DNA of 64,000 nt from Octopus bimaculoides (Eukaryota), in assembly GCF_001194135.2 (NCBI RefSeq), contig NC_068985.1:36151348-36215347 (forward strand). Direction: 5' to 3'. A program made the position numbers and the translations under genes. The notes under the pieces were generated by a model that saw nothing but the letters and a program-made list of their open reading frames with translations, was not told the origin of the DNA and made no database searches. Positions 20,346 to 64,000 of this stretch are shown here, one piece after another (within the stretch, counting starts at the first letter, position 1; every line of letters begins with the position of its first letter).

Positions 20346-20577
20346 ATAAATATATATGTATATTTATATATATATATATATATATNNNNNNNNNNNNNNN
20401 NNNNNNNNNNNNNNNNNNNNNNNNNNNNNNNNNNNNNNNNNNNNNCATCATCATCATCGTTTAACGTCCGCTTTCCATGCTAGCATATATATGTGTGTGT
20501 GTATATACATATATAGATGATGATGATGATGATGATGATGATGATAAGTGTAACTCATATATATGTATACATATAAA

Positions 20578-24460: not shown

Positions 24461-25870
24461 CATCATCATCATCGTTTAACGTCTGTCTTCCATGCATGCA
24501 TGGGTAGGACGATTGACAGGAACCAGCTAGGTATAAAAACTACCCTAGGCTACTGTGTCTATTTTGGCAGAGATTTTACGGCTGGATGCCCTTCCTAGCA
24601 TCAACCACTCTGCAGAGTGGACTCAGTGCTTTTTACGTGGCACTACCACAGGCAAAGTTAGTGTCAGCATGATTTTTACAGCTGGATGCTTTTAACATGG
24701 CACCAGCACTGGCAGGGTAACCAAGTAACTCACAAGACAAGGAATTATGAGAGGGGCAGGGTATTTGAGGAGGGGAACTTGTGTCAGAGGATGAAAGGCT
24801 AGAGTGTGACAAAGAGACAGAGAGACAGAAGCAGGTGTCTCGCCACAACAGAGGTGGGCATTAGAAGAGGTGATCCAATATCAGATAATGATAGGTTAGA
24901 GTGTAACAGAGAAATAGCAAGGCAGAAATAGGTGTCCTGCTATAGAGGAGGTACATGGTTATGCAGTGAGAGAGAGGTACAAGAAAGAGGCCAGAAACAA
25001 GTGTGCTGATGTAAAGGAGACACAGTCAGTGTCCATGTCTCACTACTATGTAACATAGCCATTCTCACACAAGCATCATACAATCTATCTTTCACTCTGA
25101 GAGAGAGTCATTTTGCTGCCAATAGAGGTAGCAGTTCTCTAAACTTCCTCCATTTTATTCTTGTTCTAGAAACACTACTTTCAGAGAATCCACCATTGTT
25201 ACTAATTTGGTCACCTAAATAGCAGAAACTATCTACTACCTCAAGAAAGCTTCCTGGGTATTTGAGAGAGTTTAAGTCCCTCATGCTCTTAGTACTTACT
25301 GTTCCTGAACATCTGCCACACACGAAAGCAACCTATATCTGATAACCTTCCTATGAGTCCACTGTTTCTTTTATGTGTCTATAGCTTACACTTGGTGCAG
25401 CAAATGGAGTTACATCCCACGCCTTTCCTACATATTGAACAGGGCCATTTATCAGCTGGAATGAGAGAGTTATCTCCTTTTGCACTAACAATTTTAGTCT
25501 TAGCTAAGTTAACATTAAAGCCCTTTGGTTCCAGGTTTTGCTTCCAAACCTGGAACTTCTTTTCCAATTCTGCTTCAGAGTTTGCAATAAGAGCAAGATC
25601 ATCTACATATAGTAGTTTCCATGGGCATCCAGTTTTGAATTCATCTGTTATGGCCTGGAGAACTCTGATGAATAAGAATGGAATAAGAACTGAACGCTGG
25701 TGTATTCTAACTTGTATGTTGAATTCATCACTGTTTTCAAGGCCAACTCTCACCTTACTGCTAGAGGGTTCTGGTTGATCTGGGTGAGGTGATGTGAACT
25801 CCTTCCCCTCTCTGGTAAATTGCTCAATCACTCTATTAACTGTAGAAAGCAGGATCCCAAGGTTTTCTGC
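24461..25870 (-). mobile_element. RTE-clade LINE remnant: RT fragment with PHD-like finger, CT-rich 3' region and family A (GAT)n end
   Basis: ORF 25379-25831 [38 protein letters not shown] (YADD equivalent), then CSIC..CTKC..HKR..CGRC and VVDSFCYLGDQIS...WRKFRELLPLL (25108-25323). It continues leftward into the catcatcatcgtttaac tail at 24461. Confidence 0.85.
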
Positions 25871-26112: not shown

Positions 26113-26892
26113 NNNNNNNNNNNNNNNNNNNNNNNNNNNNNNNNNNNNNNNNNNNNNNNNNNNNNNNNNNNNNNNNNNNNNNNNNNNNNNNNNNNNNNNN
26201 NNNNNNNNNNNNNNNNNNNNNNNNNNNNNNNNNNNNNNNNNNNNNNNNNNNNNNNNNNNNNNNNNNNNNNNNNNNNNNNNNNNNNNNNNNNNNNNNNNNN
26301 NNNNNNNNNNNNNNNNNNNNNNNNNNNNNNNNNNNNNNNNNNNNNNNNNNNNNNNNNNNNNNNNNNNNNNNNNNNNNNNNNNNNNNNNNNNNNNNNNNNN
26401 NNNNNNNNNNNNNNNNNNNNNNNNNNNNNNNNNNNNNNNNNNNNNNNNNNNNNNNNNNNNNNNNNNNNNNNNNNNNNNNNNNNNNNNNNNNNNNNNNNNN
26501 NNNNNNNNNNNNNNNNNNNNNNNNNNNNNNNNNNNNNNNNNNNNNNNNNNNNNNNNNNNNNNNNNNNNNNNNNNNNNNNNNNNNNNNNNNNNNNNNNNNN
26601 NNNNNNNNNNNNNNNNNNNNNNNNNNNNNNNNNNNNNNNNNNNNNNNNNNNNNNNNNNNNNNNNNNNNNNNNNNNNNNNNNNNNNNNNNNNNNNNNNNNN
26701 NNNNNNNNNNNNNNNNNNNNNNNNNNNNNNNNNNNNNNNNNNNNNNNNNNNNNNNNNNNNNNNNNNNNNNNNNNNNNNNNNNNNNNNNNNNNNNNNNNNN
26801 NNNNNNNNNNNNNNNNNNNNNNNNNNNNNNNNNNNNNNNNNNNNNNNNNNNNNNNNNNNNNNNNNNNNNNNNNNNNNNNNNNNNNNNNNNNN

Positions 26893-60957: not shown

Positions 60958-61404
60958 TCATCCAAAAAATGGAAATTTCTGAAACATAACTCGACATACT
61001 TCCACTTTTGTATCTTCATCTATGTTTTGAACTTCATAAACCACTGAATCCTGTGGAAGATCTAACTTAAGAATTTTTCTCAAAGTACTTTTTGGAATTT
61101 GTAATTCTGCTGAACGCTTCCTCATTGATAATGAAGGCGAACGAATAAGTGACTCTTGTATTGCAGTTAGATGTTCAAATCTTGTCCTTGGTCGACCACA
61201 ACGAGGTGCATCAAGAACACTACCAGTTTCAAATACTTTTTTCTCCCATTCTCTCAAGATGCGTGGTGTAGGTGAAGGCTTTCCAAAACGTTCCTGGAAC
61301 AATCGCCGAATTTCGGGTATTTTTTTATTATTAAGAACACGATCATGCATCCAAACAGCTGCAACTAATCGTTCTTCAATTGTATATGGACTTTGGTCAC
61401 TCAT
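60958..61404 (-). CDS. Intact 148-aa HTH-only protein (DUF4817-like Tc1/mariner N-terminus); candidate domesticated gene
   Basis: MSDQSPYTIEERLVAAVWMHDR...FQERFGKPSP...WEKKVFETGSVLDAPRCGRPRT...SPSLSMRKRSAELQIPKSTLRKILK is a paired-like bipartite HTH with a GRPR linker. It stops before the FSDE catalytic motif. A 3' splice site lies at 61418-61456, 13 nt upstream of the ATG. Confidence 0.8.
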   Translation of the reverse strand: MSDQSPYTIEERLVAAVWMHDRVLNNKKIPEIRRLFQERFGKPSPTPRILREWEKKVFETGSVLDAPRCGRPRTRFEHLTAIQESLIRSPSLSMRKRSAELQIPKSTLRKILKLDLPQDSVVYEVQNIDEDTKVEVCRVMFQKFPFFG

Positions 61405-61417
61405 AGTAGATTAATCC

Positions 61418-61456
61418 CTGTACAAAAATAAAAATAAAATAAAAGAAAATAATTAG
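61418..61456 (-). promoter_or_regulatory. 3' splice site: branch point CTAAT (61456-61452), pyrimidine tract, CAG (61420-61418)
   Basis: Minus strand reads ctgCTAATtattttcttttattttatttttatttttgtaCAG|ggattaatctactATG. Confidence 0.75.
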
Positions 61457-62409
61457 CAGTAATATTCAGAAATAACACTATGTCAAATCAAGTTAATATA
61501 ATTTCAATGATAACTACAAAGTTGAAAAATAGTTTATCAGTTTTACAGCTGAGTGCAAATATATCATATATGTATATAAATGTATAAACAATATTTGTTT
61601 GAGGACTGCGTTAATGACAACCTCAACACCAGATTCTCCTGTTAGCTTTGCTAACATGATAGATATATCAGATTTGTGCAACTGAATGAAAACAGGACAA
61701 GGCAACACCTGTAACTGAATGCTGTGTGATTAAGAAGTTTAATTAGCAATCATGTGGTACAAGGTTCGAATCCTACTGCATAATACTTTGAGCCACTATA
61801 CCCTTGGATTGACTAAAGCCTTGTGAATGGAATGTGAAGAATGGAGTCCGCCACTACATTCCTCCATGGCTAGATTTAATTTGCGTATACAAATTTAATC
61901 TGCGATCCATGGGACGAGCCGTTTTAGCGATGCGTCCTGCCCAAGCTCGTCGAAACGCCGGTGTTAAAACGTGGGTGGCTGATGAAGGAGAATGTTCTCT
62001 ATGTGGCTCGTGTGTTCTCGTCTACGTTTGTTTGCAATGTCCTGTACCCAGATATGCACCTATACATACAGGTGGATGTCGGTATGCACATACCTGTACG
62101 TATATATGCATATACTCATTTACTANNNNNNNNNNNNNNNNNNNNNNNNNNNNNNNNNNNNNNNNNNNNNNNNNNNNNNNNNNNNNNNNNNNNNNNNNNN
62201 NNNNNNNNNNNNNNNNNNNNNNNNNNNNNNNNNNNNNNNNNNNNNNNNNNNNNNNNNNNNNNNNNNNNNNNNNNNNNNNNNNNNNNNNNNNNNNNNNNCA
62301 CACACACACACACATATGAAATAGATGCATGTATACGTATTGCAAGAGAAAGAGAAATACTTAGCTAAAAGTAAGCTGCTGTACTTAACATTGATTACAA
62401 TCAAACTTT

Positions 62410-63500: not shown

Positions 63501-63792
63501 ATGTACAATCTCGTTTCTCACATATGTTTCTCGAATTTGATGTTTATATCAGTGTTATTGAAGTTCCGGTATATGTTAATGGCCATTAACATACACCGGA
63601 CCTTCAATAACACTGATATAAACATCAAATTCAAGATTGTACATCCAGACAAACCCAGAACCCTCACTCTACTCAACTTCCAACTGAAGATCACAGAGGA
63701 TGGCTCCATATTTACCAAATTCTATAAAAAAGCTGCTAATAGAAAACTTTTCATCCACTACCAATCAGCCTTGCCCATCAGAGCCAAAGTCA
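63501..63792 (+). mobile_element. Penelope-like RT thumb fragment with a 5' fold-back palindrome, truncated by a family A insertion
   Basis: HRTFNNTDINIKFKIVHPDKPRTLTLLNFQLKITEDGSIFTKFYKKAANRKLFIHYQSALPIRAK matches the PLE pattern FN......IKF......L.FLD..I......T..Y.K......H..S.HP...K. Confidence 0.8.
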
Positions 63793-64000
63793 CATCATCA
63801 TCATCATCATCATCGTTTAACGTCTGCCTTCCATGCTAGCATGGGTTGGACGATTTGACTGAGGACTGGTGAAACCGGATGGCAACACCAGGCTCCAATC
63901 TAATTTGGCAGAGTTTCTACAGCTGGATGCCCTTCCTAACGCCAACCACTCAGAGAGTGTAGTGGGTGCTTTTACGTGTCACCCGCACGAAAACGGCCAC
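63793..64000 (-). mobile_element. Young family A retroposon end, runs off the window
   Basis: (cat)n cgtttaacgtctgccttccatgctagcatgggttggacgatttgactgaggactggtgaaaccggatggcaacaccaggctcc... Confidence 0.9.

Follow-up and report, generated by a model that had tools for sequence, protein, structure and literature searches.

Is an open reading frame (ORF) that encodes the DNA-binding part of a transposase, and nothing of its catalytic part, a leftover of a mobile element or a gene of the host that carries it? We addressed this question for an ORF on the minus strand of a 64,000-nucleotide (nt) stretch of the Octopus bimaculoides genome (CM046605.1 of assembly GCA_001194135.2; G+C content, 33%), which we call the window and to which all coordinates refer unless another contig is named. 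A first-pass annotation, made from the letters of the window, had proposed that the ORF is an intact, spliced gene domesticated from a transposase. We consider it quite probable that the ORF belongs to a spliced host gene encoding the domesticated N-terminal DNA-binding domain (DBD) of a Tc1/mariner-superfamily transposase with DD36-37D relatives. This reading is supported by full-length orthologs, by low ratios of nonsynonymous to synonymous substitution rates (dN/dS), by the absence of terminal inverted repeats (TIRs), and by the splicing of homologs.

An intact ORF and its orthologs

The coding sequence (CDS) occupies positions 60958 to 61404 (minus strand), starts with ATG, and comprises 148 codons followed by TGA (60958 to 60960); this read-through form corresponds to the annotated product. 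The ORF is free of stops and frameshifts, as first described, and a stop-free run of at least 148 codons is expected about 0.08 times by chance in the six frames of a window with 33% G+C content. Whether the gene had already been annotated was a question left by the first-pass annotation; it has been, in octopus relatives, as an uncharacterized or DUF4817 protein. It is the ortholog of O. sinensis LOC115212318, whose products (XP_036359222 and XP_036359223) are 97% identical to the window protein and have a CDS of the same length. The 90%-identity cluster around the window protein contains these two accessions, O. vulgaris CAI9722633, a protein from another octopus contig, and Argonauta hians GAB1604875 (92 to 97% identity over the full length). 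Its members all end with FQKFPFFG and a stop, except for the O. vulgaris model. The predicted orthologs with a conserved stop were thus found in three Octopus species and Argonauta; in the squid- and cuttlefish-type homologs, the stop differs because an internal splice donor (see below) is used. The expectation of a single-copy gene held in part: the protein is carried by one contig per chromosome-level genome, and the gene is one of two or three old paralogs.

The dN/dS values are well below 1 (range, 0.04 to 0.07), as the domestication hypothesis had called for. We obtained 0.053 for O. bimaculoides and the Argonauta ortholog (dS, 0.73; dN, 0.039), 0.067 for O. bimaculoides and a related octopus, and 0.042 for a third ortholog pair; a pair of transcripts from the paralog group gave 0.036. 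A Fisher test applied to the full CDS gave a P value of 3e-23; for the DBD (codons 1 to 116), P was 4e-24 and the ratio of the nonsynonymous to the synonymous difference per site (pN/pS) was 0.038. The position of the stop is conserved over the same synonymous distance to Argonauta (dS, 0.73). The sole nonrepeat block that can be aligned between the octopus locus and the orthologous Argonauta locus extends from 61437 to 60960 (i.e., from within a pyrimidine tract to the stop). Compared with the related octopus, the CDS is 95.7% identical and has no indels, while the flanks are 79 to 88% identical and contain indels.

No credible inverted repeats bracket the ORF, and tblastn searches with full-length relatives as queries detected no catalytic-domain remnant 3' of the stop, in agreement with the initial description. 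The ORF itself lacks the DDE/D catalytic domain. Its stop lies about 10 residues ahead of the first catalytic D of the full-length relatives (FTDE in the relative P0056), so that the earlier statement that the ORF ends just short of the first catalytic motif is accurate. The other Tc1/mariner pieces of the window had been described as fragmentary, and this is what we observed. A mariner Transposase_1 fragment (45778 to 46380, minus strand; E = 1e-18) and a Tc1-type helix-turn-helix (HTH) fragment located beside an assembly gap (42098 to 42313, minus strand) belong to other families and do not represent the parent of the ORF.

Domain organization of the protein

The first-pass annotation had recognized a bipartite HTH domain with a GRPR linker. 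A profile match, the AlphaFold2 helix bundles, and a Foldseek search all agree with this assignment. A profile of 18 homologs matched the DBD of SETMAR (7s03; E = 3.6e-4) over both HTH units and the RSGRP linker, and the top-ranked structures in Foldseek were 7s03 and Mos1 (probability, 0.99). The window protein by itself exhibited weak similarity to DUF4817 (PF16087; 14 bits; E = 0.041; residues 31 to 63) and to the Mos1 N terminus (E = 0.078). DUF4817 was matched at E values of <0.01 by 6 of the 18 family members, and UniProt names the O. vulgaris and Acanthosepion proteins DUF4817-containing. The window protein is a divergent DUF4817 relative rather than a clean member, as judged from these scores.

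The first HTH is a three-helix bundle (residues 9 to 60; 61225 to 61380, minus strand) that is supported by the AlphaFold2 model, the DUF4817 match, and the alignment with SETMAR; its helices comprise residues 9 to 25, 29 to 40, and 47 to 60 (predicted local distance difference test [pLDDT] values, 90 to 97). It is followed by CGRPR (residues 69 to 73; 61186 to 61200, minus strand), a GRPR-type minor-groove linker that aligns to RSGRP of SETMAR. The family shows little or no variation at R68, R71, and P72, and the pLDDT of this segment is low, as expected for a flexible linker. The second HTH (residues 75 to 115; 61060 to 61182, minus strand), which was delineated from the model and from the alignment with the second HTH of SETMAR, has helices at residues 75 to 88, 94 to 101, and 105 to 115 (pLDDT of the block, about 68 to 87). 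It carries the invariant motif RKRSAELQIP, and its R95-L101 stretch is nearly invariant in the family. While the DBD (residues about 9 to 115) is basic (isoelectric point [pI], 10.5), the segment that follows it is acidic (residues 117 to 135; pI, 4.05; 61000 to 61056, minus strand). This segment corresponds by homology to the linker that precedes the catalytic core of the transposase, matches residues 104 to 126 of P0056, exhibits a pN/pS of 0.27, and is disordered in the model (mean pLDDT of the whole model, 75.9), in which the tail is disordered from residue 120 onward.

A conserved putative splice acceptor upstream of the start codon

Upstream of the ATG, the first-pass annotation had described a CTAAT motif, a pyrimidine tract, a CAG, and a 13-nt leader with a TAA and an A at -3, all of which are present as described. 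On the minus strand, the candidate branch point CTAAT (61452 to 61456), identified by its motif, is also found in the octopus contig L017. The polypyrimidine tract (61421 to 61451; about 31 nt with few purines) has comparable counterparts in two Argonauta loci (A and B) and in the loci L003 and L004; the block that can be aligned with Argonauta begins inside it, at 61437. The putative 3' splice acceptor CAG lies at 61418 to 61420, and the exon would therefore begin at 61417 with the leader GGATTAATCTACT (61405 to 61417), which contains the in-frame TAA (61413 to 61411) and the A at -3. The leader, in the form ATTAATCT[A/G]CT, and the in-frame stop are shared by Argonauta A and the related octopus (ortholog form, ACAG/ACATTAATCTGCT ATG; here and below, slashes within sequences mark exon borders), and this conserved stop fixes the start codon.

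Each of the five genomic loci (i.e., the window, Argonauta A and B, L003, and L004) has a CAG at a distance of 10 to 13 nt upstream of the ATG. Transcript contigs of the homolog P0009, recovered from many runs, carry two leaders whose point of divergence is exactly 12 nt upstream of the main ATG and which contain neither pyrimidine tract nor AG. Alternative first exons spliced to a common acceptor would give this pattern. In O. sinensis, two RefSeq protein accessions hold one identical sequence, which suggests two transcript variants that differ in their untranslated regions only. The proposal of a noncoding first exon with a junction at 61417 is supported by conservation of the acceptor in five loci and by homolog transcripts that join at the homologous point. 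We infer that the acceptor at 61418 to 61420 is used in the window gene. Since entry into the coding exon would be by a 3' splice site that precedes the ATG by 13 nt, at least one noncoding 5' exon is expected upstream. The leaders of the homolog transcripts had no match in any of the loci.

Two contigs of the related octopus, L017 and L018, were considered as octopus splice evidence and rejected, as both continue collinearly with the genome across the intron-like stretch. They start at the same base in several samples and are either genomic or unspliced. Separately, we observed a unique, relatively CpG-rich stretch 300 to 650 nt upstream of the acceptor (61700 to 62060, minus strand) with a B-box-like GGATTCGAACC and a possible donor (CAG/GTGTTG at 61709/61708). 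It does not represent a tRNA and has no repeat within the sequences compared, and it could be a relic of a short interspersed element (SINE), a promoter, or a first exon. Part of the 5' region may fall within an assembly gap (62126 to 62298) located about 700 nt upstream of the acceptor.

A conserved internal donor and a probable alternative tail

A consensus 5' splice donor (GAA/GTATGT) lies within the ORF after codon 135 (...KVE; GTATGT at 60994 to 60999, minus strand, with the GT at 60999 to 60998); Argonauta A and the related octopus have this donor as well. In the O. vulgaris model, the end is KVE-NGDGVQ and a stop, and the cuttlefish-type proteins end with KVE-TKESLQY... or KVE-VC.... 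Read-through of the donor yields the tail VCRVMFQKFPFFG (codons 136 to 148; 60961 to 60999, minus strand), which has the same stop in Octopus and Argonauta and which doubles as the donor-proximal part of the intron. Synonymous sites behind the donor are almost frozen among the octopods (pS, 0.07, versus 0.49 in the DBD), which fits such a dual role.

We found a candidate downstream exon in the window (51686 to 51773, minus strand) that matches the C terminus of the O. vulgaris model (P0021). A TTTTAG acceptor is followed there by AAT GGT GAT GGC GTT CAG TGA (i.e., NGDGVQ and a stop; 51773 to 51753; chance expectation in the window, 1.5e-5) and by a possible donor (CCAG/GT at 51686/51685). Up to 10 kb from the Argonauta gene, L016 contained no NGDGVQ exon. 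In decapodiforms, the homologous internal donor is used: comparison of the locus L004 with the transcripts L019 and L020 delimits an exon (L004 positions 9988 to 10468), a 2.7-kb intron (GAG/GTTGTT ... TTTTTCAG/ACC), and a terminal exon from position 13171. Because the octopus gene combines a conserved donor with a matching downstream exon, it probably produces two C-terminal isoforms (148 and about 141 amino acids [aa]), both consisting of the DBD and a short tail.

Mobile relatives and family history

An exhaustive profile search returned 2,896 relatives, mainly short fragments, of which P0056 (341 aa) and P0085 (359 aa) are full-length looking. P0056, P0085, and P0116 contain the motifs F[ST]DE, QQDGAP, and SPDL, which in the first two come after the N-terminal domain; the spacing between the second and third D is 37 residues in P0085 and P0116 and 36 residues in P0056. 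A DD37D spacing is assigned to the maT clade (reference 8 of PMC13548663), which may be the parent of the gene. The octopus ORF (residues 14 to 144) is 41% identical to residues 1 to 135 of P0056 (BLASTP; E = 1e-32), and its DBD is 41 to 60% identical to those of P0056, P0085, and elements of the land snail Bradybaena similaris, including an MxDxSPYTxEER N terminus. Relatives of the DBD also occur in lobster, bichir, lampreys, and millipede.

In the tree, the nearest noncephalopod neighbors of the cephalopod proteins are the B. similaris copies. Two of these, located on different chromosomes (L021, positions 2846 to 3851; L022, positions 2847 to 3851), form a block of about 1.0 kb with sharp edges and 90.5% identity, whose ends are 30-nt inverted repeats (CAGGGTGGCCACAAAGTCCCTGGTCA) with flanking TA. 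They are internally deleted, nonautonomous Tc1/mariner-type transposons of the parent family, and their level of identity across chromosomes suggests fairly recent activity in the snail, which also carries at least five degraded DBD copies called as genes. No match to the snail-type TIR was detected in the window or in the cephalopod loci, and neither a parent-type TIR nor a catalytic remnant was seen in the approximately 150 kb of cephalopod sequence examined. The same DBD is also present in a conserved protein of about 199 aa in three lamprey species (P0045 and P0189-P0191) and within SNRNP25 isoform models of Lampetra planeri (P0043/P0188). These lamprey proteins may represent independent domestications or exonizations of the same transposon family.

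All the cephalopod proteins form one clade (bootstrap, 0.995), within which the octopod group that contains the window protein is supported by a bootstrap value of 1.0. A second group includes a protein of the cuttlefish Acanthosepion pharaonis, and a looser "B" group (bootstrap, 0.74) includes a second Argonauta gene located between KIFAP3 and CWC25. Synonymous sites are saturated between the groups, and one ENA sample contains two types on separate contigs. The split between octopods and decapodiforms dates back hundreds of millions of years. The simplest reading of these sequence relationships is one ancient domestication, which would have been followed by duplication before or around that split.

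Two apparent leads to neighboring genes were rejected. Synteny via KIFAP3 and CWC25 fails in that neither gene has exons in the window and in that P0006 is a paralog, not an ortholog. Two Argonauta family proteins (L001 and L016) bear the name "eukaryotic translation initiation factor 1b-like isoform X1"; we found no eIF1b exon in the window, L001, or L002, and none within 10 kb of either Argonauta gene. The name may be a propagated annotation or may hint that, in some species, a homolog and an eIF1b gene have a 5' exon in common.

Proposed function and alternative explanations

On the domestication reading, the N-terminal DBD of a transposase would have been retained by the host while the catalytic core and the TIRs were lost. 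The gene would yield a 148-aa product consisting of the DBD, an acidic disordered segment, and a 13-residue tail, and the donor after codon 135 probably serves to swap this tail by way of an exon about 9.2 kb downstream. The protein would bind DNA sequence specifically, with the two HTHs in adjacent major grooves and CGRPR in the minor groove in the manner of Mos1 and SETMAR, and would act as a small regulator through the occupancy of its sites or through the recruitment of partners by the acidic tail. We regard a regulatory or chromatin-related role in the host as somewhat likely and transposon repression as unlikely; the remaining probability falls to other roles or to a larger isoform. Because the family predates the split between octopus and cuttlefish, such a role is more likely than pure repression of transposons. 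More speculatively, and in our view rather unlikely as a whole, the coleoids may possess two or three ancient, transcription factor-like paralogs that form a family specific to this lineage and so far undescribed. Each would be reduced to the DBD, with a short C-terminal tail exchanged by regulated alternative splicing, and their binding to dispersed sites derived from transposon ends would wire a cephalopod-specific regulatory network.

Several observations weigh against the domestication reading. The Pfam score for DUF4817 (14 bits) falls below the gathering threshold (22.6 bits), and solved structures are matched by Foldseek with low TM-scores (about 0.3), which is explicable because two subdomains are joined by a flexible linker. 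No effector domain is recognizable in the protein, whose DNA binding, target sites, and regulatory effect are predictions. The transcript support for the window gene itself consists of annotation models, and the contigs closest to it (L017 and L018) run collinearly through the acceptor and look genomic. Microsynteny with Argonauta was not shown, as the flanks cannot be aligned and no common neighbor is present within 10 kb. Finally, the evidence on copy number consists of the contigs that carry the protein rather than a genome-wide count in octopus. As to the findings that the first-pass annotation had named as arguments for a different origin (i.e., copies with TIRs, a lack of orthologs, neutral dN/dS, and a lack of spliced transcripts), none was encountered, with splicing being shown in homologs.

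The same gene could have been selected for defense against its parent transposon, either by competing for TIRs or by poisoning oligomers, like the KP repressor of the P element. A DBD from which the core has been removed would suit a competitive inhibitor, and in another mollusc the parent family does exist as a transposon with TIRs. However, the family is common to octopods and decapodiforms with saturated dS between paralogs, while DNA transposon families are usually active for far shorter periods; moreover, several paralogs are kept, each with its own tail, and the approximately 150 kb of cephalopod sequence examined holds no trace of parent-type TIRs or catalytic domains. We thus consider defense as the selected function unlikely. 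It is very unlikely that the ORF is the N-terminal exon of a larger protein whose main isoform is spliced to exons for an effector domain, even though an internal donor and a downstream exon exist, DBD relatives of lampreys are embedded in longer gene models (e.g., the SNRNP25 isoforms), and the Argonauta proteins are named after an initiation factor. In the spliced forms observed, a stop follows after just 6 further residues (O. vulgaris model) or 26 (decapodiform transcripts), the O. sinensis RefSeq models are 148 aa long, and every cephalopod protein of the family has at most 244 aa, with no other Pfam domain in the 18 members scanned and no eIF1b exons in the window or the loci.

A rival reading of the 5' structure is a single-exon gene, or an unspliced transcript, in which the acceptor-like motif is unused. 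Collinearity of L017 and L018 through the motif and their start at the same base in several samples would agree with this, and a T-rich tract followed by AG is common in DNA with 33% G+C content. Against it stand the position of the CAG, which is kept in five loci that are otherwise unalignable upstream, the homolog leaders that lack pyrimidine tract and AG and join at that very point, and the two apparent RefSeq transcript variants of O. sinensis that encode one identical protein. On balance, an unspliced gene appears quite improbable. The idea of a decaying transposon relic that is open by chance, or of a multicopy nonautonomous element, draws on the many DBD fragments that are called as genes elsewhere (e.g., in Bradybaena), and it is contradicted by the selection tests, which reveal constraint (dN/dS, about 0.05; P, about 1e-23). 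The stop that is conserved over a dS of 0.73, the contrast between a CDS without indels and flanks with indels, the lack of TIRs, and the occurrence of the protein on one contig per chromosome-level genome likewise oppose this idea, which we find barely credible. The reading that we prefer is accordingly that of a spliced host gene for a domesticated DBD.

Surroundings of the gene

The nearest conventional gene is TMEM117, whose terminal coding exon (862 to 1383, plus strand; PF15113; E = 2.6e-48) covers profile positions 290 to 411 of 411. It lies about 50 to 60 kb away in a convergent orientation to the octopus gene and represents a usable synteny anchor. The window also contains a reverse-transcriptase fragment (25382 to 25831, minus strand) and a dispersed SINE-like repeat of about 160 to 200 bp (7317 to 7470, 20446 to 20486, 47040 to 47207, 51942 to 52096, and 63793 to 63955), one copy of which precedes the candidate downstream exon by about 170 nt. 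This repeat occurs in both Argonauta loci as well (70 to 90% identity). A near-perfect palindrome of 108 nt (63529 to 63636) consists of two abutting 54-nt arms that are 94% complementary; partial copies are present in L002 (positions 7769 to 7876; i.e., in the same place) and elsewhere. The window has 13 runs of N (e.g., 5150 to 5868, 26113 to 26892, and 47415 to 48167, besides the gap at 62126 to 62298), often adjoining (TA/CA)n sequence that resembles microsatellites.

Significance and comparison with known systems

The gene is already annotated and uncharacterized; its kind is known, and this cephalopod family is not described in the literature that we searched, in which we found no mention of the gene identifier or of DUF4817 in cephalopods. 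A survey of transposon-derived transcription factors that covers O. bimaculoides (PMC10027918) does not include the family. Transposons abound in cephalopod genomes, whose lineage-specific regulators have been poorly catalogued. The orthologs, the dN/dS of about 0.05, the loss of the TIRs and of the catalytic core, and the host-type splicing make a stringent case for domestication. Since a gastropod still carries recognizable mobile relatives, the gene provides a clean, datable example of how a DNA-binding module of a transposase turned into a host gene. The internal donor and the near-frozen synonymous sites illustrate an overlap between coding sequence and splicing signal. If the more speculative reading given above is true, the family would serve a network of sites derived from transposon ends that is analogous to that of SETMAR and Hsmar1, much older and without an enzymatic partner domain. 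Given its small size, the protein is tractable for asking whether relics of transposon ends serve as cis-regulatory sites in cephalopods.

The closest mobile relatives (P0056, P0085, and the Bradybaena elements L021 and L022) have the N terminus in common with the octopus gene. They differ in having a catalytic core or its remnants, 30-nt TIRs with TA, and multiple diverged copies per genome; furthermore, 13 nt separate the acceptor of the octopus gene from the ATG, whereas the corresponding region of the transposon consists of about 155 nt of element sequence that reaches to its TIR. The intron-bearing Tc1 elements "TLEWI" of bivalves (10.1101/656579) were considered and set aside, because they are full-length members of a different family (DD36E). 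Mos1 (3hos and 5hoo) exhibits the same N-terminal fold and order, and the octopus ORF ends where the catalytic domain of Mos1 begins; unlike the octopus gene, Mos1 has a DD34D core, TIRs, and TA duplications and is active as a transposase. The best profile and structure match is SETMAR (Metnase; 7s03), a domesticated mariner DBD with an RSGRP linker that derives from Hsmar1 and still binds dispersed TIRs. In contrast to the octopus gene, SETMAR kept the whole transposase (a DD34D mariner), is fused to a SET methyltransferase, and is restricted to anthropoid primates; the identity over the aligned structure is 23%.

Related domestications include the CENP-B-like genes. The paired domain of Pax proteins is thought to descend from a Tc1-like transposase, and Pax5 (1k78), which has a bipartite HTH, ranked ninth in the Foldseek search. 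Pax domains are far older, exhibit no sequence similarity detectable here, and reside in larger transcription factors. Another case is CG4570 of Drosophila, a Tc1/mariner domestication of 225 aa that consists of the DBD only and is under purifying selection (PMC13548663). CG4570 and the octopus gene both keep the N-terminal HTH region alone, have lost the catalytic domain, are conserved across a clade, and are proposed to bind specific sequences. CG4570 represents an independent event in insects, whereas the octopus gene is smaller, belongs to a small family of paralogs, and probably combines its DBD with alternative 3' splicing of the tail.

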